A DNA stretch of 64,000 nucleotides from Schizochytrium sp. TIO01 (GCA_004764695.1 SMSO01000032.1:7472483-7536482), one strand, 5' to 3'. Shown: positions 49,388 through 64,000, numbered from the stretch's first letter. Made by a program: numbers and translations. Notes: generated from the letters alone by a model not told the origin.

Positions 49388-52300
49388 GGCGCTCTACCTC
49401 AACGAAGAAACTCCGCAAACCTTCGTCAGAACCCAGTGCTGATGCTCGTGCGCCCCAATACCAGCACAGTTTCAGGATTTGCTGGCTCTGCGGCCCTCGT
49501 GGGTGTCCATTCCGTACCGCAATCAGCACCCTCGACACCGCCCTCAACGCCGTGTGCGGTTCTGCGTCAGTTCCTGATTAGTTCTCACATATTTAACCCT
49601 CTGTCCTCAGCTCTTCCAAATGAGTTATCTTCTGCTGCAAGTGCAGTATCCGCGGCATTACACTACGCTATACAGAAGCAAGCGCCGGGTCCTTTTCTGG
49701 ACCTCAGCCGTGCTCAGTTCGTGCATGGAAAGCGCAAAGCTGGCCAAGGTCTGGGCACGGCGCGTTCCAAGGTGACGTCACAGACACAATTGTGATGCTG
49801 GTCATGTCGATGGACAAGAGATATAAACTTAGGGCCTTCTTGGCGCCCACATTGAGCGAGCGACGTGGCCGCCTTCCCTGAAGACGGTTCCCGTATCGTT
49901 CCGATGTGACCAATCATTTGCTTTCACTTGGCGGTACTTGCGGACCTCTTCGTGGAAACCATGGAATGAAGGCTGTGGCAGAGGTTCTCTAGGCCTCGCG
50001 AGGCCACAAGAAAGTGCTGATGTTTGGGGAAAGCTTGATCGACGCTGCGAGGTTGTAGGCGCTCTCATTTGCCTGCAACTTGCAACTCAACCCGGTCTGC
50101 ATCGAATTGCACGCGAGAGAATTACAGAATCTACCATGAGAACGAGGCTGAAATGTAATTCTCTCTCCAGGGAAGATTGGAGATGGCGAATTCGACGGAA
50201 ACCTACGGCGTGCCCAGGACTTTGCAGATCTGCAAATTGTCACCGGCTTTGAGCGAAGTCTTGGAGTGCTGAGAGACGATGACAGCGCTCTAAAGTGCAA
50301 CGTCAATGCTTCAATCCAAATGGAAATTGGCTCGTCGGCATCGTAATAACGGAGAAGTGACATCAGGCCGTCCAAGTGACCCGGAAAATGCGGTAGGCCT
50401 GGGTCTGCACTTGAGCACTTGCTTAAGCCATTCTTGTAAACCGCAAGGAAGTAGAACCCGTTGATGATTGTGGAGCAGGCAAGGCCTTTGGAGTTCAAGA
50501 TACAATGACGTTGGTGAAGGTTATGAAAACTATTTTACTTCATTTGTCAACTTGAGGTGGACATTTGGACACCCGTCGCAGTTTCGAATGTATTGTCACG
50601 GCGTAGTTCCTCGAATAGTCTGAAACGAATGTCAAGCTTCAGAGGTTCTTCCAGACTTGCGTTCTGGTGAACGGTTCGTGCGAGAGCAAATACATTGACC
50701 TTGGAGTTATCGTTGTGCCATTAAGAACCTCGTCAAGTTACCCTGTGCAAGCTGTGGAGTGAGTGCCTTGGGTTCCCTATGCCGACGTAAGTTTATCAAC
50801 GTGACGTCACAAATTTTGTTGGCGAGAGGAGAGTTCCCGCAACCTTCTCTCCAGAGTCAGTCTAACCTGCTGCCACCGATGTCTCTGCTTGCATGCCTGC
50901 CTGCTAGTCCAAGCACAGTGAGCCTATCCAATATCCAAAGCTCAATCAAATTTCAAGCTTCTAACCTTTCGAAGGATTGTATCTCAAGCATGGCTTATCA
51001 TGGCTTGTCAGCATAAGCGAGTAATACTTCTCGCTGCACATCAATGGTCTCTAGTCAACTCGCGAAACTCTATGTCTATTGAGAAGACCAAGTCATTCAT
51101 CCAAACCTTGATCGCGCGTCATGCTATTAGAGAGCACCTTGATAATATGAACAAATAGACATATGTGTATATATTTCAATAATAAATTATGTATTTATAC
51201 TATGACACGGTCCTTGCGCGTATTCCTAAGGGTGCGACACCTTGGTATATTTATGGGTGTTTGTCAGGAACTCGTCGGGATTGTGTTCATTTGCGATAAA
51301 ACATTAACACATTTACCATGATACGACTGGATATTATCACCACGACATGTATCTTCGTCAACTAGGTACCTCCCCCTTTGCCCCAAATGGTAACAACAGT
51401 CCAGCTGGAACATACAAAGCATACATGATATCTTTCTCAGCCACAACTGGGGTGGTAGATTTCATGGTACTATATTCTTTTCTTTGGCATTTGACGCGCT
51501 TTTGAAAAGCGAGCAGACGTTGAACGAGCAGCAGCACTCCTCTTGTTGTAATAAAACACCCTCATCGCCTCATTCGTGCATGACAGTGCAGTGCTCATCA
51601 CCCCCTTCAATCCATGGCTGCACAATGGGAAGTACTAGGTACGTAACCAGCGTCATCATAGGACATGTGATGTGGACCCATCATGACCCTCCATCCCAAA
51701 GACCCCTCAAAAGCGCATCAAACTTATCTCCCACCAAGAATAAGAAGTCCTCGCTTGCTTGTTTCTGCAATGGATGCTACAGCCACGGCATCAAGCACCA
51801 TGACAGCTAGGCATGACTTCGCCACCCCATCACAACTTGAAAGCTTTAGAGTTGTGAAGTTGTGCTGTACCGGCCAGTCCCAGCTGCTCTTGCTTGAGTA
51901 AGGCGATGAAATGAATGTCCTTCCTGCAACAAATGACGTTCCATCGAGCCCTCGATTATTGCGGTTTCTCTCGACACGCACACCGCTCATACAGAGGAAG
52001 GAGCACCTGGCCCCACTCGGAGTTTGCGGCAGCGTCGCCTTCACCCTCCAGCTTGGATGGCCATACGATCGTCTCCAAGTTCTTCATGTTCTCATGTTCT
52101 TCATGTTCTTCAGTAGGCCTCGAAGACGTGTGGGAGCGCTGACCACGGCTGTTTTGGAGGCTGGCGGGCCCGACAGTCACCTCTCCAAGGAACTTACTTA
52201 CTCGCCTCCCTGAAGCAGCTGAGCCCAAACTATTCACAGGCACAATGTCAGAGGAACTGGCCAATTTGGGCAAAGGCCGCCACATTGGAGTAAAATGGAG

Positions 52301-54345
52301 CTCGCGTTCGCTTCACGCAACGGACTCAATCTTGGAGTTGAAACCCGCAAGAGATCTATCTGTCTACAAGCTCGAATGCAACTCGTTCAAGTTGAGCTCC
52401 ATCGAAGAAGAGCGCTCGGACCTCCAAGTTTACAGCGCCCAAACTAACCAACTCATCAACCAACTAACTAACTAACTAACTAACTTTCATACTTCCTGAC
52501 TTCTGGACCCTTTCGCACGCAGCCTGCAGATAAATTCATACGCAGACAACCTCTTGCTGTGCAAGCATGGATCAGCTCCGGAGCGCCAAGGCCGCATCAG
52601 CAGCCAAACCGTCGATGATGGCCGGATCCACAGCCGGGCAATTTGGCGCCGTTTTCGAGGTCGAGCTTGAATGCGCCATAGTACTCGATGATGGCGTCAC
52701 TCGCTCGATTCATAAGATAAGCAGCTTACCATTAGTACCTCCTAAACGCACCTAGCGCAGAGAAGATTCGCCCGAGCCAGCATCGTCTCGCATACAGAGG
52801 TCTCCGGCCTGCCCCCCTCGAAGCCGGGTCGCCACCAGCTTCTGCTTACCTGGCCAAGCTGCCGACGCCGAGGGGTTAGTTTGGAACTACCCAACGATAG
52901 TGTGACCACCGGGGAAACCTTGGAGTAGAAACGCCGGCGCCGTGTGTGGTGCGGAATCTGAGATGTTAATACAGGCGTGTGATTGTGGGTCTTTGGGGAG
53001 AGATGGAGGAGCCGCAAGCGACGGCCCTTAGGCTTCGAACAGGGCGGCGCGGGAGCTCTCGTGACAGCCAGATTTACAGTCTGCGGTGTTGATTGAGCCC
53101 TGGGGTTTCAGGTTTATGTGATTCTATTTTAACTTATTTTTTAGTCCTGAAAGTTACACATTTATTTTTTACTATTTATTTATTTTATTTAAATTAAAAA
53201 AAATGTTCATTTATTTCATAAGAGAAACTAATCACAATTCAAGTTCATCATTTTTCAAGTTACATGAAATAGTTTCGAAATAGGTGGTCTCCCTTTCAGC
53301 GATTGTTCACTCTTATGGTTTATGATAGAAGGGCTGACAATGGGGGCAGCTCATAAAGCAAGAGAGAGAGAGAGAGAAAGAGCGAAAAGCCTAAACTTCG
53401 AAACATTTTCCCTTTTTCTTTTCTTTTCTTTTCTTTTCTTCTCATTTCATTTGATCTGTTTGTTTCTATTCTTCGGAATTTGCATGAACGGTGGAAGCTT
53501 GCGAGTTTCCAAGAAAGGCTTATCAGAAGTGGTGGCGAAGCTCTTTCCAGCCATCGGAAATCCGCTGGCTTTGAGTCAAAACATCACTGCAAGCACCCGT
53601 CTTTCAGGTGCCTTCCGTCTGAAGGTTTTGAGCCACCTGGTGAGCTCTTGCAGCGTTTCCACGGCCGAATGAATCGAAGGCATTTCCATTCCACGAACCT
53701 CCTGACCCTTTCTCTATGCTTTATTTTTATTTTATTTTTTTAAAGGTATCTACCTATGTACTTCCCTAGCAAGGACTAGTTCCAACATTTTTCTATTTCT
53801 ATTTATTTATTTATTTATTTTTATTTGTGGTTTTGTTTGTAAAGGTTTGGATTTGGTCAAAGCCTCGGATCCAACTTGGGCGGAATCAATTCAGGTAAGA
53901 CAATCAAAGCCTTCAGGATTTGCAGCACTTTAGTACATACTGCAGAGAGTGGAGGTTAATTATGGTCCGTTGTGGTGAAGACTTTGCAAAGGTTTAACTT
54001 ACATTCGCAGGCGAGTTTTCTTTTCTGGAGCTGTCTTCCGTTTATCCAGGATGTACTTCCTTCAAATTTATTGCGCAGCATTCTTTTTGACGAGTGACCA
54101 GCGATTTTACGATTCTTATTAATTTTATTTTCAACTTAGGTACACAATGAATAAATGTTAGGAAAATAAGACAGCCTGACATCGCGTCGCTTATGCTCGA
54201 CAAATGTGGAATCTTGACATTGCGCGAGGGCCGACCCCTCTTTGGTTAACTTGCAAGCCTGCACTTGCACGAATTAGTCCATGGCTTTACATTGACAGAT
54301 TGAACCCCTTTTCAATGCTTCTTCTGTGTACTATTCAGATTAAAT

Positions 54346-54387
54346 AAGAATAAATAAATAAATAAATAAATATATAAATAATAAATA
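54346..54387. repeat. (AATA)n microsatellite
   Basis: aataaataaataaataaataaat... Confidence 0.7.
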
Positions 54388-55540
54388 GGGGAATAGCTGC
54401 AAAAGTTCCGAAGTAACCTTAGTGCCATCAATGAACGAATAAATAAGAATCAATGAATGAGTTGCAAATGATGTCTCAGGCTCCTTTGCATTGTAGTTTG
54501 TCTTTGCCTCTTATAGCCGCCTTCCCTTCCATTATGGCGGTCTTTAAGTTACATTCAAGAAAATAGCGCCGTTTGTATTCAGGTCACTTGTTCCCACGAT
54601 GGAAAATGATATGGAAATGGCAATGGGTAAATGGAAACGACAGGAATGAGCAATGCCTCTTCGTTTGCAGGCTGAGTTTGCAGGAGTAAAATATGCTTCT
54701 CTCAGGACTCGACCCGAGCAAATACCACAATGTCTCCGTTGCGATTTTGGTTTACCGGCACTGAATGATCTCCGCCGTCATTTCCTGATTGCAGAAGCTC
54801 CTCTCGTTAACAAATCAAGCAGATTATTAGCAGTAATAATAGTAATAGTAGTATTAGGAGCCTGCTATTCATAAAAACTAAGTTAAACCTGTGATAAAAG
54901 AAAAGAAAAGCTATGACTCATAATGCCGAGGTATATGGAACCTTTGGAACGGATGCTTCATTTGAATTGGATTGGTTAAAAAAAATTAACAATTTAAATT
55001 ACAATTCTGACTGATGATAGAAAAGCAAAGAACTTTGAAACTTGAAGAAGAAAAAAAGAAAAAGAAAAAGAGAGAGAAAAGAAATGGAGAAAAATGGAAA
55101 ATGAGAAGTGACGAAATAACTTTGAGCGGCAGACTGCCTTCGCTCCAGGCCCGGAGCGCGGCAGAGAGCGACGCGTTCACGCTCTTCCGCTGCCGAGGCG
55201 CCGCTGGGACTTTACGGTACGTTCGGGACTGATTTTCCGGAGGTTGGACCCCGAGGATCCTGACGAAGGTGGATGGGCAGTGATTAATGGCATGCCGATT
55301 TCGATCCAACCACGACGCTTTCTTCTGCCTTCACAGAAAAGCCAAAGGCTTGCATTGCCTTGACATGTTTGCGAGAGCGTGTTTAATTGCGCGTTTGTAT
55401 CTCGAGCTCTGTTTGACAAGAACGAGGGTTTTGCGGGGCGAGGGTGAAGCTGTGATGCCTAATGATGAACCAAGACTGACGGAATCTGGACGGGAACTGT
55501 GGAATTTTGCGCAAACAAATGTCTTGAAATTTGATTCACG

Positions 55541-55563
55541 TGGTGGTGGTGGTGGTGGTGGTG
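55541..55563. repeat. (GGT)n tract ~150 bp upstream of the metH start
   Basis: tggtggtggtggtggtggtggtg. Confidence 0.8.
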
Positions 55564-55713
55564 GATTGGATCTCACCTTGCAGGTCTCGATTTGAACGTT
55601 TATAGAGGAGCACTATCTTAATTCACTTGCTTGCAAAAGTAGTGAAGACTGGCGCTGAGTGCATCTATTCGTGCACTGGCGACAGAAACTTTGTTGTCTT
55701 TCGGTGAGACATC

Positions 55714-58700
55714 ATGGCGTCCGATAATGTGGAGAAAAAGCCTCATGTGAAGTTCTCGTGGAATTCTGGCGATGCTGCCAAGCCCAAACCACAGACAAAT
55801 GGCCCTCCGCGCCCACCTAGTGAAGCTGCTCGTAATTCTACGCCCAACCCGTACGATTACGAGGCATTCAACAACATTGAAGAAATTGCGTCTCTTCGGA
55901 AGAATGCTGACAAACTCAACTGGGCCCAGCCGGCAGACCTGTACCCTCAAAACTTTCCCGCCTTTGTCCGTGCCCGTGATAGTTTGCGTGAGTACATTAC
56001 CAAGCTCTTCACTGATGAAATTGCACTCTATGATGGTGCCATGGGTACCATGATCCAGAACTACGCCAAAGATAACACTCTTGAGGAAGCCGAGTTCCGT
56101 GGTGATCGCTTCAAAGACTGGTCTTGCTCAGTCAAGGGCAACAATGATATGCTCTCGATCACTCAGCCCAAGGTCATCAAGGACATCCACAAGGCGTACC
56201 TTGAGTCTGGCTCCCGCCTCATTGGTACCAACACTTTCTCGTCTACCACGATTGCCCAAGCTGATTACGAGATGGAAGACTTTGCGTATGAGCTGAACTA
56301 CATCAGTGCTCGTCTTGCTCGTGAGGCTTGTGATGAGGTGACCGCCGCTGACCCGACCAAGCCCCGCTTTGTTGTTGGTGCTATTGGCCCTACCAACCGC
56401 ACTGGTTCGATCTCTCCGGATGTGGAGGACCCGAGTGTCCGTAACGTCACTTTTGACGAGCTTGTGACTGCTTACTTTGAGCAGGTTGTCGGTCTGATGG
56501 ATGGTGGTGCCGATATTTTGATGGTTGAGACAATCTTTGATACCCTCAATGCCAAGGCCGCTTTGTTTGCTATCACAGAGTATCTCGAGATGACTGGTCT
56601 TGATGTGCCTGTTTTCGTTTCTGGTACATTGGTAGACCAGTCTGGTCGTACACTGTCAGGTCAGACCGGTGAGGCATTCTACGCTTCCATTCGTCATGCC
56701 AGGCCCATGTGTGTTGGTCTCAACTGTGCTCTGGGTGCTCAGCAAATGGAGCCTTTCTTGGTTCGCCTTAGCGAGGTTGTTGAGTGCTTCGTGCATGTTT
56801 ATGCCAATGCTGGTTTGCCAAACGCCATGGGAGGCTATGATGATACCCCTCACGACATGGCCTGCTACAACACACCGTTCTTTACCAAGAACCTTGTGAA
56901 TATGGTAGGTGGTTGCTGTGGTAGCACCCCGGGTCACATTGCTGCTTTGGGCGAGACAATCAAGGCGCAGGGATTCAAGCCACGTCCTCTTCCTGACCTT
57001 GGTCTTCCGAAGATGTGGCTCTCCGGTCTTGAGGACTTGATTGTTGATGATGTGCATAACCAACACGGAATGCCTTTCTTGAACGTTGGCGAACGCTGTA
57101 ACATTGCTGGCTCCCGCAAATTCAAGCGTTTGATTATGGAAGGCAACTACGGTGAGTGCATGGATATTGCCAAACAGCAGGTTGCTGATGGTGCACACGT
57201 AATCGACATCAATGTCGATGATGGTATGCTCGATGGTCTTGAGGCTATGCAAAAGTTTGTCAAGATCGCTATCACCGAACCCGAGGTCTCCAAGGTGCCC
57301 TTCATGCTCGATGCATCAAACTTTGATATCGTCCTTGCTGGTCTCAAGTGGTGCCAGGGCAAGCCTATTGTGAACAGTATCTCTCTCAAGGTCGGTGAGG
57401 AGAAGTTCAAGAAGCAGGCTACCTTGTTGCGCAAGCATGGTGCTGCTATTGTTGTGATGGCATTCGACGAGGAAGGTCAGGCAGCTACAGAGGATGAGAA
57501 GGTTCGAATCTGCAAGCGTTCGTACGACATTCTTGTGAATGAGATTCGCTTCCCGCCTGAAGATATCATCTTTGATCCCAATGTCCTGACTATTGGTACC
57601 GGAATGGAGGAGCACAACTCGTATGGTGTTGACTTTATCAACGCAGTGCGTCGTATTAAGGAGTCATGTCCGTTTGCAAAGATCAGTGGTGGTATTTCTA
57701 ACTTGAGTTTCGGATTCCGTGGTGTACAGAAGATTCGTGAGTCCATTCACGCTATTTTTCTTGAGCATGCAATTTTGGAGTCTGGTATGGATATGGGCAT
57801 TGTCAACGCTGGTGAGCTCTTGTGTGCAGACGATGTAGAGCCAGACTTGCGTGAGCTTTGCGAGGATCTCGTTCTCAACAAAATTCCTGAAGCCACTGAG
57901 CATATGCTTGAAGCGACAGCATATGAACGCAGCGTAATTGATGCTCGCAAGAAGGGCCTTCCTGCTCCGAAGAAGCCTCGTATCAAGGTGACGAAAAAGC
58001 CTCATGTGAAGTTCTCTTGGAATTCTGGTGACGCTACTAAGCCGAAGCCCCAAACGACTGGCCCCCCTCGTCCTGTCTCAGATGCTGCGCGCAACTCAAC
58101 ACCGAACCCGTACGATTACGAGGCATTCAACAACATTGAAGAAATTGCGTCTCTTCGGAAGAATGCTGACAAACTCAACTGGGCCCAGTCAGCCGACACG
58201 TACTCTTCTAGCTATCCTTCGTTTGTCCGTGCTCGGGACAGCCTGCGCGAGTACATTACCAAGCTCTTCACTGATGAAATTGCACTCTATGATGGTGCCA
58301 TGGGTACCATGATCCAGAACTACGCCAAAGATAACACTCTTGAGGAAGCCGAGTTCCGTGGTGATCGCTTCAAAGACTGGTCTTGCTCAGTCAAGGGCAA
58401 CAATGATATGCTCTCGATCACTCAGCCCAAGGTCATCAAGGACATCCACAAGGCATACCTTGAGTCTGGCTCCCGCCTCATTGGTACCAACACTTTCTCG
58501 TCTACCACGATTGCCCAAGCTGATTACGAGATGGAAGACTTTGCGTATGAGCTGAACTACATCAGTGCTCGTCTTGCTCGTGAGGCTTGTGATGAGGTGA
58601 CCGCCGCTGACCCGACCAAGCCCCGCTTTGTTGTTGGTGCTATTGGCCCTACCAACCGCACTGGTTCGATCTCTCCGGATGTGGAGGACCCGAGTGTCCG

Positions 58701-61700
58701 TAACGTCACTTTTGACGAGCTTGTGACTGCTTACTTTGAGCAGGTTGTCGGTCTGATGGATGGTGGTGCCGATATTTTGATGGTTGAGACAATTTTTGAT
58801 ACCCTCAATGCCAAAGCCGCTTTGTTTGCTATCACAGAGTATCTCGAGATGACTGGTCTTGATGTGCCTGTTTTCGTTTCTGGTACATTGGTTGACCAGT
58901 CTGGTCGTACACTGTCAGGCCAGACCGGTGAGGCATTCTACGCTTCCATTCGTCATGCCAGGCCCATGTGTGTTGGTCTCAACTGTGCTCTGGGTGCTCA
59001 GCAAATGGAGCCTTTCTTGGTTCGCCTTAGCGAGGTTGTTGAGTGTTTCGTGCATGTTTATGCCAACGCTGGTTTGCCAAACGCCATGGGAGGCTATGAT
59101 GATACCCCTCACGACATGGCCTGCTACAACACACCGTTCTTTACCAAGAACCTTGTGAACATGGTAGGTGGTTGCTGTGGTAGCACCCCGGGTCACATTG
59201 CTGCTTTGGGCGAGACAATCAAGGCGCAGGGATTCAAGCCACGTCCTCTTCCTGACCTTGGTCTTCCGAAGATGTGGCTCTCCGGTCTTGAGGACTTGAT
59301 TGTTGATGATGTGCATAACCAACACGGAATGCCTTTCTTGAACGTTGGCGAACGCTGTAACATTGCTGGCTCCCGCAAATTCAAGCGTTTGATCATGGAA
59401 GGCAACTACGGTGAGTGCATGGATATTGCCAAACAGCAGGTTGCTGATGGTGCACACGTAATCGACATCAATGTCGATGATGGTATGCTGGATGGTCTTG
59501 AGGCTATGCAAAAGTTTGTCAAGATCGCTATCACCGAACCCGAGGTCTCCAAGGTTCCCTTCATGCTCGATGCATCAAACTTTGATATCGTTCTTGCTGG
59601 TCTCAAGTGGTGCCAGGGCAAGCCTATTGTGAACAGTATCTCTCTCAAGGTCGGTGAGGAGAAGTTCAAGAAGCAAGCCACTTTGTTGCGCAAGCATGGT
59701 GCTGCTATTGTTGTGATGGCATTCGACGAGGAAGGTCAGGCAGCTACAGAGGATGAGAAGGTTCGAATCTGCAAGCGTTCGTACGACATTCTTGTGAATG
59801 AGATTCGCTTCCCGCCTGAAGATATCATCTTTGATCCCAATGTCCTGACTATTGGTACCGGAATGGAGGAGCACAACTCGTATGGTGTTGACTTTATCAA
59901 CGCAGTGCGTCGTATTAAGGAGTCATGTCCGTTTGCAAAGATCAGTGGTGGTATTTCTAACTTGAGTTTCGGATTCCGTGGTGTACAGAAGATTCGTGAG
60001 TCCATTCACGCTATTTTTCTTGAGCATGCAATTTTGGAGTCTGGTATGGATATGGGCATTGTCAACGCTGGTGAGCTCTTGTGTGCAGACGATGTAGAGC
60101 CAGACTTGCGTGAGCTTTGCGAGGATCTCGTTCTCAACAAAATTCCTGAAGCCACTGAGCATATGCTTGAAGCGACAGCATATGAACGCAGCGTAATTGA
60201 TGCTCGCAAGAAGGGCCTTCCTGCTCCGAAGAAGCCCCGTATCAAGGTGACGAAAAAGCCTCATGTGAAGTTTTCATGGAATTCTGGTGAGGCTGCGAAG
60301 CCGAAGCCCCAAACGACTGGACCTCCTCGCCCTCCCAGTAAGGCAGCCCGCGCTTCAACACCGAACCCGTACGATTACGAGGCATTCAACGACATTGAAG
60401 AAATTGCGTCTCTTCGTAAGAATGCTGACAAACTCAACTGGGCCCAGCCAGCAGACACGTACTCTTCCAGCTATCCTTCGTTTGTCCGTGCTCGGGACAG
60501 CCTGCGCGAGTACATTACCAAGCTCTTTACTGATGAAGTTGCACTCTATGATGGTGCCATGGGTACCATGATCCAGAACTACGCCAAAGATAACACTCTT
60601 GAGGAAGCCGAGTTCCGTGGTGATCGCTTCAAAGACTGGTCTTGCTCAGTCAAGGGCAACAATGATATGCTCTCGATCACTCAGCCCAAGGTCATCAAGG
60701 ACATCCACAAGGCATACCTTGAGTCTGGCTCCCGCCTCATTGGTACCAACACTTTCTCGTCTACCACGATTGCCCAAGCTGATTACGAAATGGAAGACTT
60801 TGCGTACGAGCTGAACTACATCAGTGCTCGCCTTGCTCGTGAGGCTTGTGATGAGGTGACCGCCGCTGACCCGACCAAGCCCCGCTTTGTTGTTGGTGCT
60901 ATTGGCCCTACCAACCGTACTGGTTCGATCTCTCCGGATGTGGAGGACCCGAGTGTCCGTAACGTCACTTTTGACGAGCTTGTGACTGCTTACTTTGAGC
61001 AGGTTGTCGGTCTGATGGATGGTGGTGCCGATATTTTGATGGTTGAGACAATCTTTGATACCCTCAACGCCAAGGCCGCTTTGTTTGCTATCACAGAGTA
61101 TCTCGAGATGACTGGTCTTGATGTGCCTGTTTTCGTTTCTGGTACATTGGTTGACCAGTCTGGTCGTACACTGTCAGGTCAGACCGGTGAGGCATTCTAC
61201 GCTTCCATTCGTCATGCCAGGCCCATGTGTGTTGGTCTCAACTGTGCTCTGGGTGCTCAGCAAATGGAGCCTTTCTTGGTTCGCCTTAGCGAGGTTGTTG
61301 AGTGTTTCGTGCATGTTTATGCCAACGCTGGTTTGCCAAACGCCATGGGAGGCTATGATGATACCCCTCACGACATGGCCTGCTACAACACACCGTTCTT
61401 TACCAAGAACCTTGTGAATATGGTAGGTGGTTGCTGTGGTAGCACCCCGGGTCACATTGCTGCTTTGGGCGAGACAATCAAGGCGCAGGGATTCAAGCCA
61501 CGTCCTCTTCCTGACCTTGGTCTTCCGAAGATGTGGCTCTCCGGTCTTGAGGACTTGATTGTTGATGATGTGCACAACCAGCTTGGAATGCCTTTCTTGA
61601 ACGTTGGCGAACGCTGTAACATTGCTGGCTCCCGCAAATTCAAGCGTTTGATTATGGAAGGCAAATATGGCGAGTGCATGGATATTGCCAAACAGCAGGT

Positions 61701-64000
61701 TGTAGACGGTGCACACGTAATCGACATCAATGTCGATGATGGTATGCTGGATGGTCTTGAGGCTATGCAAAAGTTTGTCAAGATCGCTATCACCGAACCC
61801 GAGGTCTCCAAGGTTCCCTTCATGCTCGATGCATCAAACTTTGATATCGTTCTTGCTGGTCTCAAGTGGTGCCAGGGCAAGCCTATTGTGAACAGTATCT
61901 CTCTCAAGGTCGGTGAGGAGAAGTTCAAGAAGCAGGCCACTTTGTTGCGCAAGCATGGTGCTGCTATTGTTGTGATGGCATTCGACGAGGAAGGTCAGGC
62001 AGCTACAGAGGATGAGAAGGTTCGAATCTGCAAGCGTTCGTACGACATTCTTGTGAATGAGATTTGCTTCCCGCCTGAAGATATCATCTTTGATCCCAAT
62101 GTCCTGACTATTGGTACCGGAATGGAGGAGCACAACTCGTATGGTGTTGACTTTATCAACGCAGTGCGTCGTATTAAGGAGTCATGTCCGTTTGCAAAGA
62201 TCAGTGGTGGTATTTCTAACTTGAGTTTCGGATTCCGTGGTGTACAGAAGATTCGTGAGTCCATTCACGCTATTTTTCTTGAGCATGCAATTTTGGAGTC
62301 TGGTATGGATATGGGCATTGTCAATGCGGGAGAACTTCTTGGCGCAGATGAGGTTGAACCTGAATTACGGAAGTATTGTGAAGACCTTGTGCTTAACAAG
62401 AATCCTCAAGCCACCGAGCGGATGCTTGAGGCTACTCAACGTGAGCGTGAACGTCTGAAGCGTTTGAAGGAGGGTGGCGGAGAAGCTGCTGCTGCAGCCA
62501 AGCCTACCGATTGGCGCTCAAAGCCTGTTAACGAGCGTCTCTCTCATGCACTGGTAAATGGTATTACAAAGTTCATTGAGAAGGATGCTGAGGAGGCTCG
62601 GCTCGCATCATCAAAACCTTTGGATGTTATCGAAGGTCCTTTGATGGACGGTATGGGCATTGTTGGTGATCTTTTTGGCGCTGGCAAGATGTTCTTGCCT
62701 CAGGTGATTAAGTCTGCTCGTGTCATGAAGAAGGCTGTTGCCTACTTGGAACCTTTCATTGAAGAAGAAAAGGAGGCAAACCTCCGTGCTCTTGGTATTA
62801 ACCCTGAGGACGCAGATCCTGATGAGGTTGCCCAAGGTACCTTCTTGATTGCCACGGTTGCTGGTGATGTTCATGATATCGGTAAAAACATTACAGCAGT
62901 TATTCTTGGTTGTAATGCCGTGAAGGTGATTGATCTTGGTGTCATGGTACCTTGCGAGGACATTATTAAGGCTGCAATTGAGAATAAGGTGGATTGTGTT
63001 GGTCTATCTGGTCTGATCACACCCAGCCTTGACGAGATGGTTAAGGTTGCAAAGGAAATGAAGAAGGCTGGCCTTAATGTGCCCCTTCTCATTGGTGGTG
63101 CAACTACAAGCAAACGCCACACCGCGATTAAGATTGCTCCTCACTACGCAACTCCCGAGCACCCTGTGATGCATGTACTTGATGCCAGTCGTGCTGTCAC
63201 TGTTGTGCAGTCTCTTCTTTCCGAAGAAGATAAGCCTGACTTCGTTGAGGAGGTCCAGGAGGAATATGAAGAGATTGTCGAAGACTACTATGCTGGTCTA
63301 GAGGAGCGCAAGTTCTACCCCTTGCCGGTGGCTCAAGAAAAGCGTCTCAACATTGACTTTGAAGCTATTCCTCCTGCACCGAAGCCACATGTGGCTCTTG
63401 GGGCGCAGAAGGCACCAGATTGCCCGATCGAGGATGTAGTACCGTACATCGACTGGGGTCCGTTCTTTCACACCTTTGAGCTGCGTGGCAGGTATCCTAA
63501 CCGCGGCTACCCGAAGATCTTCAATGATGCCAATGTTGGTGCTGAAGCCAAGAAGCTCTTTGATGAGGGACAGGAGATGCTGAAGAAAATTATGGCTGAC
63601 AAGAGTTTGTGGCTCGAAGGCACATATGGTATCTTTGCTGCCAACCGTAGTGCAGACGGCGAGGATGTTGTCATCTATGAAGATGAGAGCCGCAGCACCG
63701 AACGTGGTAAGCTCTGCATGCTCCGTCAACAGGCACAGAGCGAGTCTGCAAACATGTTTAGCCAAGCTGATTTTATTGCCCCTTCGGGCTTCCGAGATTA
63801 CATTGGTGGCATGGCCGTTGCTTGTCATGGTGTTGATGAGCTTGCTGGCAAATATAAGGCTGACAACGATGATTTCACCAGTATTCTTGTACAAGCTATT
63901 GGTGACCGTCTGGTCGAAGCTTACGCTGAGAAGCTGCATCGCGACATCCGTGTGGAGCTGTGGGGTTACGCCAAGTCTGAATCTCTTAAACACGAAGACT
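55714..64000 (+). CDS. metH: Cobalamin-dependent methionine synthase with three tandem Hcy-binding + CH3-folate-binding modules; 3' end beyond the window (at least 2762 aa)
   Basis: Start at ATG 55714 (atcATGG). The frame was read through both unit junctions without a stop. Each unit has [76 protein letters not shown] and [13 protein letters not shown]. These are followed by a single cap ([34 protein letters not shown]), the B12 motif GDVHDIGKN (His codon at 62872), [16 protein letters not shown], and the AdoMet domain ([24 protein letters not shown]). Confidence 0.95.
55734..57992 (+). repeat. metH internal repeat unit 1 (2259 bp, 753 codons)
   Basis: gaaaaagcctcatgtgaag recurs at 55734, 57993 and 60252, exactly 2259 bp apart. 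Confidence 0.95.
57993..60251 (+). repeat. metH internal repeat unit 2 (2259 bp)
   Basis: Core is near-identical to unit 1; N-terminal linker is distinct ([24 protein letters not shown]). Confidence 0.95.
60252..62460 (+). repeat. metH internal repeat unit 3 (near-identical to ~62324, then diverged)
   Basis: Same core as units 1 and 2. After ...ggcattgtcaa (62324) the sequence diverges: [34 protein letters not shown] versus [34 protein letters not shown]. Confidence 0.93.

Follow-up and report, generated by a model that had tools for sequence, protein, structure and literature searches.

In Schizochytrium sp. TIO01, the gene metH for cobalamin (B12)-dependent methionine synthase carries a real, old and homogenised tandem triplication of the catalytic half of the enzyme, and belongs to a widespread class of multi-module MetH proteins for which no description was found. 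The gene lies at the end of a stretch of 64,000 nucleotides (nt) of genomic DNA, hereafter the window (GCA_004764695.1, SMSO01000032.1; contig C31:7472483-7536482 of assembly G000). Three units of 753 residues, each composed of an N-terminal extension, a homocysteine (Hcy) barrel and a folate (Fol) barrel, are followed by one Cap domain, one B12 domain and one S-adenosylmethionine (AdoMet) activation domain. The product is a variant of a known enzyme and not a new kind of system. As a joint statement, we consider it probable that the organism possesses no further gene for a cobalamin-dependent methionine synthase, that the old triplicated array is read as one polypeptide of 2,865 residues and that its one cobalamin domain serves all modules.

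The metH frame runs without a stop over 2,762 codons in the window and terminates at window position 64311, 311 nt past the window end, so that the complete intron-less open reading frame (ORF) comprises 8,598 nt and 2,865 residues (L003:201-8798). The initial annotation, made from the sequence of the window, had read this frame as three extension-Hcy-Fol units ahead of one Cap-cobalamin-AdoMet half and had placed the stop outside the window; the stop-free translation, the Pfam assignments and the 753-residue period bear out this reading. Pfam recognizes S-methyl_trans (PF02574) and Pterin_bind (PF00809) three times each in the product, while B12-binding_2, B12-binding and Met_synt_B12 are found one apiece, and the repeat period is exactly 2,259 nt (753 residues). 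The motifs GLNC, GGCCG, DINVDD, NSIS and DPN and a further motif of 12 residues occur in three copies each, spaced by 753 residues, in agreement with the earlier view that none of the three modules is inactivated. The motifs GDVHDIGKN (residue 2384) and RPAPGYP (residue 2772) are present in a single copy each.

Assignment of the protein to the MetH family is based on several lines of comparison. The Zn-ligand motifs GLNC/GGCC at residues 335/399, 1088/1152 and 1841/1905 align with the same motifs of human MTR, and GDVHDIGKN, the Asp-x-His-x-x-Gly lower-ligand motif, is identical in the alignment with the human enzyme. The AdoMet reactivation domain PF02965, whose RxxxGY motif is represented by RPAPGYP, scores 352 bits over profile positions 2-273. 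Unit 3 together with the tail matches NF007024 with 1,753.8 bits (cut-off 1,497; profile positions 8-1233 of 1,234) and TIGR02082 end to end with 1,528.8 bits (cut-off 1,010.85), and aligns across the full length with human MTR (PDB 9ssp). The textbook description of MetH with one copy of each module does not fit a protein with three Hcy and three Fol modules; on the evidence of these comparisons, the metH product appears to depart from the described architecture and not from the catalytic definition of the family (EC 2.1.1.13). A search of the whole genome with the activation-domain profile returned one match only, and no second cobalamin-binding MetH half was found.

Near-identical cores of 1.8 kb are a classic source of mis-assembly, and a true locus with one unit or with another number of units has to be considered. 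The 1.7-kb core has exactly three matches in the 64-Mb assembly, all within metH, and the assembly consists of only 37 contigs, with metH on a contig of 9 Mb. Most of the stretch is also held by 20 public runs from 11 studies, and four of these, from four studies and all as Logan contigs, were compared with window positions 55600-61599; X5 and X6 are DNA runs, and X3 and X18 are probably RNA, a status that is guessed. Each of the four runs contains a contig that links unique upstream DNA to extension 1, distinct 142-nt contigs specific to extension 2 and to extension 3, and a 237-nt contig that links the end of the core to the start of the next extension and fits both junctions. The core contig stops at a sequence fork, the loose end of which reads the unit-3-type continuation toward the Cap domain. 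In X5, contig depth amounts to 371 for the upstream piece, 362 for extension 2, 374 for extension 3, 673 for the junction and 974 for the core, and in X6 to 96, 111, 105, 167 and 314-347 respectively, near 1:1:1:2:3 in both runs; as contig depth does not equal copy number and one of the DNA runs may be the source of the assembly itself, this pattern is consistent with three units, short of proof. The initial annotation had named a depth of about one third over the repeat and missing junction-spanning reads as findings that would speak for a single unit; what was recovered instead are three unit edges at about equal depth, with the junction about twofold and the core about threefold. Three modules are moreover present in a 75%-identical relative (P0001, on a 1.4-Mb contig) and in Chrysophaeum taylorii. 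As far as the contigs show, the tandem triplication is real, and an origin in the assembly process is extremely unlikely.

The divergence between the units is distributed unevenly. While the units are 93-97% identical in DNA overall, identity over the first 300 nt is 73-87%, rising from 73-86% over nt 1-150 to 86-96% over the next 150 nt, and reaches 98-100% from nt 300 to about 2,100, past which unit 3 diverges into the canonical Fol-Cap linker. Pairwise synonymous divergence (dS, Nei-Gojobori) between the extensions is 0.80, 0.81 and 0.25, with a ratio of nonsynonymous to synonymous divergence (dN/dS) of 0.09-0.24, and the cores show by the same method a dS of 0.04-0.07 and a dN of at most 0.005. 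Because dS of the extensions reaches about 0.8, the duplication must be considered old. Gene conversion has kept the barrels uniform within limits that coincide with the domain edges, a case of concerted evolution, and all three extensions have evolved as translated, constrained protein under purifying selection.

These values also bear on the possibility that one module only is expressed, either because transcription starts inside the array or because units are spliced out. The frame is unbroken, the dN/dS of about 0.1 in all three extensions indicates that each of them is translated, and X3 and X18, the runs that are probably RNA, contain the junction piece as well as the pieces specific to each of the three extensions. 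In the contigs, nothing was found that speaks for such a shortened transcript. Assembled transcripts of relatives hold two modules in one ORF (MMETSP transcript ORFs P0005 and P0029, the latter labelled 'type:complete'). Expression of one module alone is therefore very unlikely.

The initial annotation knew of no described triplicated MetH. This stands insofar as no paper that describes repeated Hcy/Fol modules in MetH was found among open-access papers and bioRxiv, with a description elsewhere being possible, and two broad surveys of algal and dinoflagellate metH give the enzyme the usual domain set (PMC11439496, PMC11197592). The architecture is, however, not special to this genome, as sequences with two to four modules are public for many algae and protists. 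A full-length homologue search limited to proteins of 1,576-5,014 residues yielded 313 matches, and all 240 homologues retrieved were split into modules; 102 of them possess two complete modules, 18 possess three and at least one possesses four. The best named match is the protein of Hondaea fermentalgiana (87% identity, two modules, 2,120 residues). Two modules are likewise found in Mucochytrium quahogii (2,102 residues), Nitzschia inconspicua (2,113 residues), Epithemia, Mesostigma and a pedinophyte, three in Chrysophaeum taylorii (2,877 residues), Chlorella sorokiniana (2,693 residues), Volvox carteri (2,783 residues), Chlamydomonas eustigma and the dinoflagellates Polarella glacialis (2,721 residues) and Prorocentrum, and four in Haematococcus lacustris (3,657 residues) and Bryopsis. 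Such proteins sit in NCBI, UniProt, MMETSP and metagenome protein sets under the plain label 'methionine synthase'. When representatives clustered at 50% were searched with a one-module query, other representatives stood in for most of the multi-module proteins, and proteins of about 2,000 residues with two to three matching stretches were few. Single-module MetH of 1,245-1,430 residues is common in stramenopiles, as in Phaeodactylum, Skeletonema, Cyclotella and Ectocarpus.

Inside each multi-module protein the modules are 87-100%, mostly 97-100%, identical, and in a maximum likelihood tree of 58 modules, obtained by a quick search, they group by species (SH-aLRT support 93-100 for species groups) and never by position. 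In the same tree, the labyrinthulomycete modules nest within ochrophyte MetH, beside Ectocarpus (SH-aLRT 84) and in a clade with the diatoms (SH-aLRT 99), which could reflect a transfer of the gene from an algal donor or an artefact of the tree.

The junctions between modules carry the information on age and origin. In labyrinthulomycetes, diatoms and pelagophytes, the non-terminal modules close with a stramenopile junction motif (aromatic-E-R ... KK-G-L-P-x-P-basic-K-P-R); after it comes the extension of about 100 residues, a copy of which also stands at the start of the protein. Several columns are invariant over 27 proteins, and the motif is present at both junctions of the metH product. 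A strict pattern detects it at 75 junctions and looser variants at about 12 more, while none was found in the terminal linkers of the 121 multi-module proteins. We refer to its bearers as stramenopile-type multi-module MetH, a grouping defined in the present analysis and not a published family. Extension copies within one protein can be as distant as copies between genera (42% identical in Mucochytrium, 61% in Epithemia), and across species the extensions do not group cleanly by position. The green algae have in common a different junction (L-D-P-K-S-K-P-T ... L-P-P-V-P-x-Y-K) unrelated to the stramenopile type, the dinoflagellates show a third type, and P0101 and P0102 a fourth. From the shared junction motif, the diverged extension copies and the unrelated green and dinoflagellate junctions it therefore follows that the multi-module state is ancient in stramenopiles, and that multi-module MetH either arose at least three times independently or has junctions that diverged beyond recognition.

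Whether the additional modules matter to the enzyme is a separate question. Module number could have drifted through unequal crossing-over and gene conversion with no kinetic benefit, the proximal module doing the work and the distal ones being tolerated passengers; module number indeed varies from one to three among close stramenopile relatives, and homogenisation of the core is shown directly. On the other hand, the distal extensions, which escaped homogenisation, are under purifying selection with the dN/dS given above, the junction is conserved from diatoms to labyrinthulomycetes, the rise of multi-module forms involved at least three unrelated junction types and 1,500 extra residues are costly. 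Furthermore, of the 141 non-terminal modules of the 121 multi-module homologues, 138-141 carry any given one of six catalytic motifs, the same rate as in terminal modules, and even distal modules with a divergence of 6-13% from their siblings (Chlamydomonas eustigma, Mucochytrium, Haematococcus) keep the motifs. Drift of passenger modules is on these grounds an unlikely explanation.

The explanation favoured here, one cobalamin domain serving all modules, would work as follows. Three near-identical, motif-intact Hcy-Fol double-barrel modules would be chained like beads, the tethers between them being about 30 flexible residues long; the one cobalamin domain would dock on the folate site of any module, take up the methyl group and deliver it at the Hcy site of any module. 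With several loaded substrate sites available to each bound B12, turnover per cofactor would rise, or flux would be maintained when substrates or B12 are scarce, and B12 would thereby be saved. Modules 1 and 2 share 99-100% identity with module 3, and therefore any surface of module 3 that receives the cobalamin domain exists on the others too. As an isolated fragment, the N-terminal half of E. coli MetH can exchange methyl groups with free cobalamin. A precedent for one corrinoid carrier that serves alternative methyltransferase modules is provided by the split MtgB/MtgE-MtgCD systems (bioRxiv 10.64898/2025.12.19.695462).

Structure prediction was applied to the tether between modules and to docking of the cobalamin domain. 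An AlphaFold2 model of Fol1-linker-extension 2-Hcy2, built on an alignment of 27 sequences, has a predicted local distance difference test (pLDDT) value of 78 and a predicted template modelling score of 0.82; between the barrels it places a helix after the folate barrel and then one low-confidence stretch, residues 755-784, with the rest of the extension at pLDDT 81-95. From this model we infer that the double barrels are rigid beads and that tethers of about 30 residues connect them, with the relative placement of the barrels being untrustworthy because an alignment of repeats cannot separate intra- from inter-module contacts. A Foldseek search with the model matched the single barrels to known MetH structures one at a time and returned nothing on the extension. 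When module 1 and Cap-cobalamin were co-folded as separate chains, the score was 0.60 (0.60, 0.60 and 0.59 in the individual runs) versus 0.00 for the best control, with a partner pLDDT of 71-72 and at least 50% of contacts shared between runs. Of 78 solved complexes 51 reach the mark applied, as do 2 of 108 mismatched pairs; scores of 0.60 or below comprise only 5 of the 78 solved complexes, yet all 4 mismatches that passed. The prediction weakly supports docking of module 1 with Cap-cobalamin when the covalent linker is left out.

Alternatively, the distal modules might work by other means than the cobalamin domain in cis, as free Hcy-Fol enzymes after cleavage, in trans with the cobalamin domains of other molecules or as buffers of methyl-folate or homocysteine. 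The inter-module junction is basic, proline-rich and predicted to be flexible, split methionine synthases are known to act in trans (bioRxiv 10.64898/2025.12.19.695462), and the genome is devoid of a second cobalamin-binding MetH half. No protease site or evidence of processing was found, however, the green and dinoflagellate junctions are not basic and a covalent tether favours use in cis, which leaves this alternative with a low probability.

Several points weigh against service of all modules by the one cobalamin domain. One cobalamin occupies one site at a time, and turnover per B12 would be higher only if substrate binding or product release, and not domain movement, limits the cycle. The co-fold prediction is weak and its pass may reflect memory of solved MetH structures. 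The evidence for the full-length mRNA and protein in this organism is indirect, as neither the ends of a transcript nor its continuity over 8.6 kb can be read from contigs. Gene conversion alone could keep the distal barrels intact-looking, which makes module identity weaker evidence of function than it appears. Finally, many close relatives (Phaeodactylum, Skeletonema, Ectocarpus) are single-module, so that the extra modules would be dispensable, unless some of these gene models are collapsed repeats. A still broader proposal is that aquatic protists and algae have adapted convergently by multiplying modules before a single cobalamin domain, that this adaptation, with at least three junction types and homogenised by gene conversion, has been maintained over long times, and that it raises turnover per bound B12; this proposal can be put forward tentatively at most, and we regard it as rather doubtful.

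With respect to the B12 physiology of the organism, no match to the canonical MetE family PF01717 was found anywhere in the 64-Mb assembly. A related Schizochytrium and related thraustochytrids are, however, reported to possess a divergent MetE-like domain as part of an AT-KS-MetE-CzcO fusion that is induced when cobalamin is lacking (PMC9734096); a strict dependence on B12 is therefore not to be assumed. Auxotrophy for B12 is documented for some thraustochytrids only (PMC12734794).

The metH product agrees with canonical MetH (E. coli MetH, human MTR; PDB 9ssp, 8ssc, 8g3h) in the five Pfam domains and their order, in the Zn cysteine triad and in the motifs of the folate site, of the cobalamin domain (DxHxxG) and of the activation domain (RxxxGY), but differs by two additional complete Hcy-Fol modules upstream, each with an extension of about 100 residues and a dedicated linker, and by a length of 2,865 versus about 1,230-1,265 residues. 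With public multi-module MetH it has in common the order (Hcy-Fol)n ahead of one Cap-cobalamin-AdoMet half and, in the case of the stramenopile members, the junction motif and the extension; module number differs, with two in Hondaea, Mucochytrium and diatoms, three here and four in Haematococcus, and the green and dinoflagellate proteins have unrelated junctions and are devoid of the extension. MtgB/MtgE with MtgC-MtgD, and MetH1/MetH2 of Rhodobacterales, also have one corrinoid-binding unit that trades methyl groups with more than one methyltransferase module (bioRxiv 10.64898/2025.12.19.695462), but as separate proteins with different substrates, whereas the modules here are identical and covalently chained. 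MetE is equally a methionine synthase enlarged through intragenic duplication of a barrel (PMC539065), although there is no sequence relationship and the barrels of MetE have diverged after their duplication, in contrast to the near-identical metH copies with their catalytic motifs kept.

A repeated unit in a multi-domain enzyme is also seen in polyunsaturated fatty acid synthases, which occur in thraustochytrids too and possess tandem acyl-carrier domains thought to raise throughput. In those enzymes it is the carrier that occurs in several copies and each catalyst in one, while in MetH of Schizochytrium sp. TIO01 the catalysts are multiplied and the cobalamin carrier is single.

Some observations on individual homologues may be added. 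In the two-module protein of Hondaea (P0002), the two extensions are 97% identical, unlike those of metH here and of other relatives, and the model opens with a run of eight methionines; its repeat may be partly collapsed or mis-modelled in the respective assembly. The N-terminal 60-130 residues of green multi-module MetH (Volvox P0067, Chlamydomonas eustigma P0054, P0104 and Pedinophyceae P0110) contain long hydrophobic stretches that resemble a transmembrane hairpin, which suggests that these enzymes are membrane-anchored; the stramenopile proteins do not possess them. In Mesostigma viride (P0108), each module is preceded by about 90 inserted residues, for which the precomputed domains list PF16561 (AMPK1_CBM-like); the insert has been duplicated along with the module. 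Three distant proteins of about 2,000 residues (P0252, P0309 and P0346; 32-38% identical) match Hcy-Fol in two to three stretches from residue 420-520 onward and probably represent further kinds of fusion that include the catalytic half of MetH.

The features of the locus are compiled in the table. Over the approximately 5 kb upstream of metH (window positions 50500-55713) the longest ORF has at most 116 codons, and two microsatellites, (AATA)10 at position 54349 and (GTG)8 at position 55540, are located there. A scan of the upstream region for sigma-70 promoters and terminators was disregarded, the model being inapplicable to a eukaryote. On the minus strand, an ORF of 198 residues recurs once per unit (56656-57252, 58915-59511 and 61174-61770); these ORFs were rejected as genes, being a mechanical by-product of the repeat with no sign of a gene.

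Table. Features of the metH locus in window coordinates
Feature	Position	Strand	Basis
metH ORF, 2,865 residues	55714..64000, on to 64311	+	open frame
Extension 1 (residues 1-100), N-terminal extension of the stramenopile MetH type, diverged edge of unit 1	55714..56013	+	unit comparison
Hcy barrel 1 (PF02574; GLNC, GGCCG)	56026..56958	+	Pfam, motifs
Folate (pterin-binding) barrel 1 (PF00809)	57088..57807	+	Pfam, motifs
Inter-module linker 1 (residues 706-753), predicted helix, then basic proline-rich junction motif	57829..57972	+	alignment, model
Extension 2, first ~30 residues predicted flexible, remainder predicted ordered	57973..58272	+	unit comparison, model
Hcy barrel 2	58285..59217	+	Pfam, motifs
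Folate barrel 2	59347..60066	+	Pfam, motifs
Inter-module linker 2, DNA identical to linker 1	60088..60231	+	unit comparison
Extension 3	60232..60531	+	unit comparison
Hcy barrel 3	60544..61476	+	Pfam, motifs
Folate barrel 3, then canonical Fol-to-Cap linker	61606..62325	+	Pfam, MTR alignment
Cap domain (B12-binding_2, PF02607)	62530..62751	+	Pfam
Cobalamin-binding Rossmann domain (PF02310; GDVHDIGKN)	62839..63114	+	Pfam, MTR alignment, motif
AdoMet reactivation domain (PF02965), runs past the window end; RPAPGYP beyond the window	63427..64000	+	Pfam, motif

The locus is a clean case of intragenic concerted evolution with sharp boundaries at domain edges. Short-read genomes and transcriptomes are likely to contain near-identical repeats of 1.8 kb in collapsed form, and some of the 'single-module' algal METH models may consequently be wrong; peptide-based quantification of MetH, in cultures as in the sea, would over-count molecules by the module number. 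MetH is a textbook enzyme whose cobalamin domain must swing among three sites, and three identical pairs of sites constitute a ready-made experiment on how freely this domain moves and which step limits turnover. If multiplication of modules is indeed a convergent adaptation, the cobalamin domain would not be confined to the covalently adjacent barrels, and estimates of the B12 demand of plankton and of MetH abundance from peptide or transcript counts would need to be rescaled by module number. As B12 limits the growth of much marine plankton, the production of more methionine per B12 would, if true, represent an overlooked vitamin economy.

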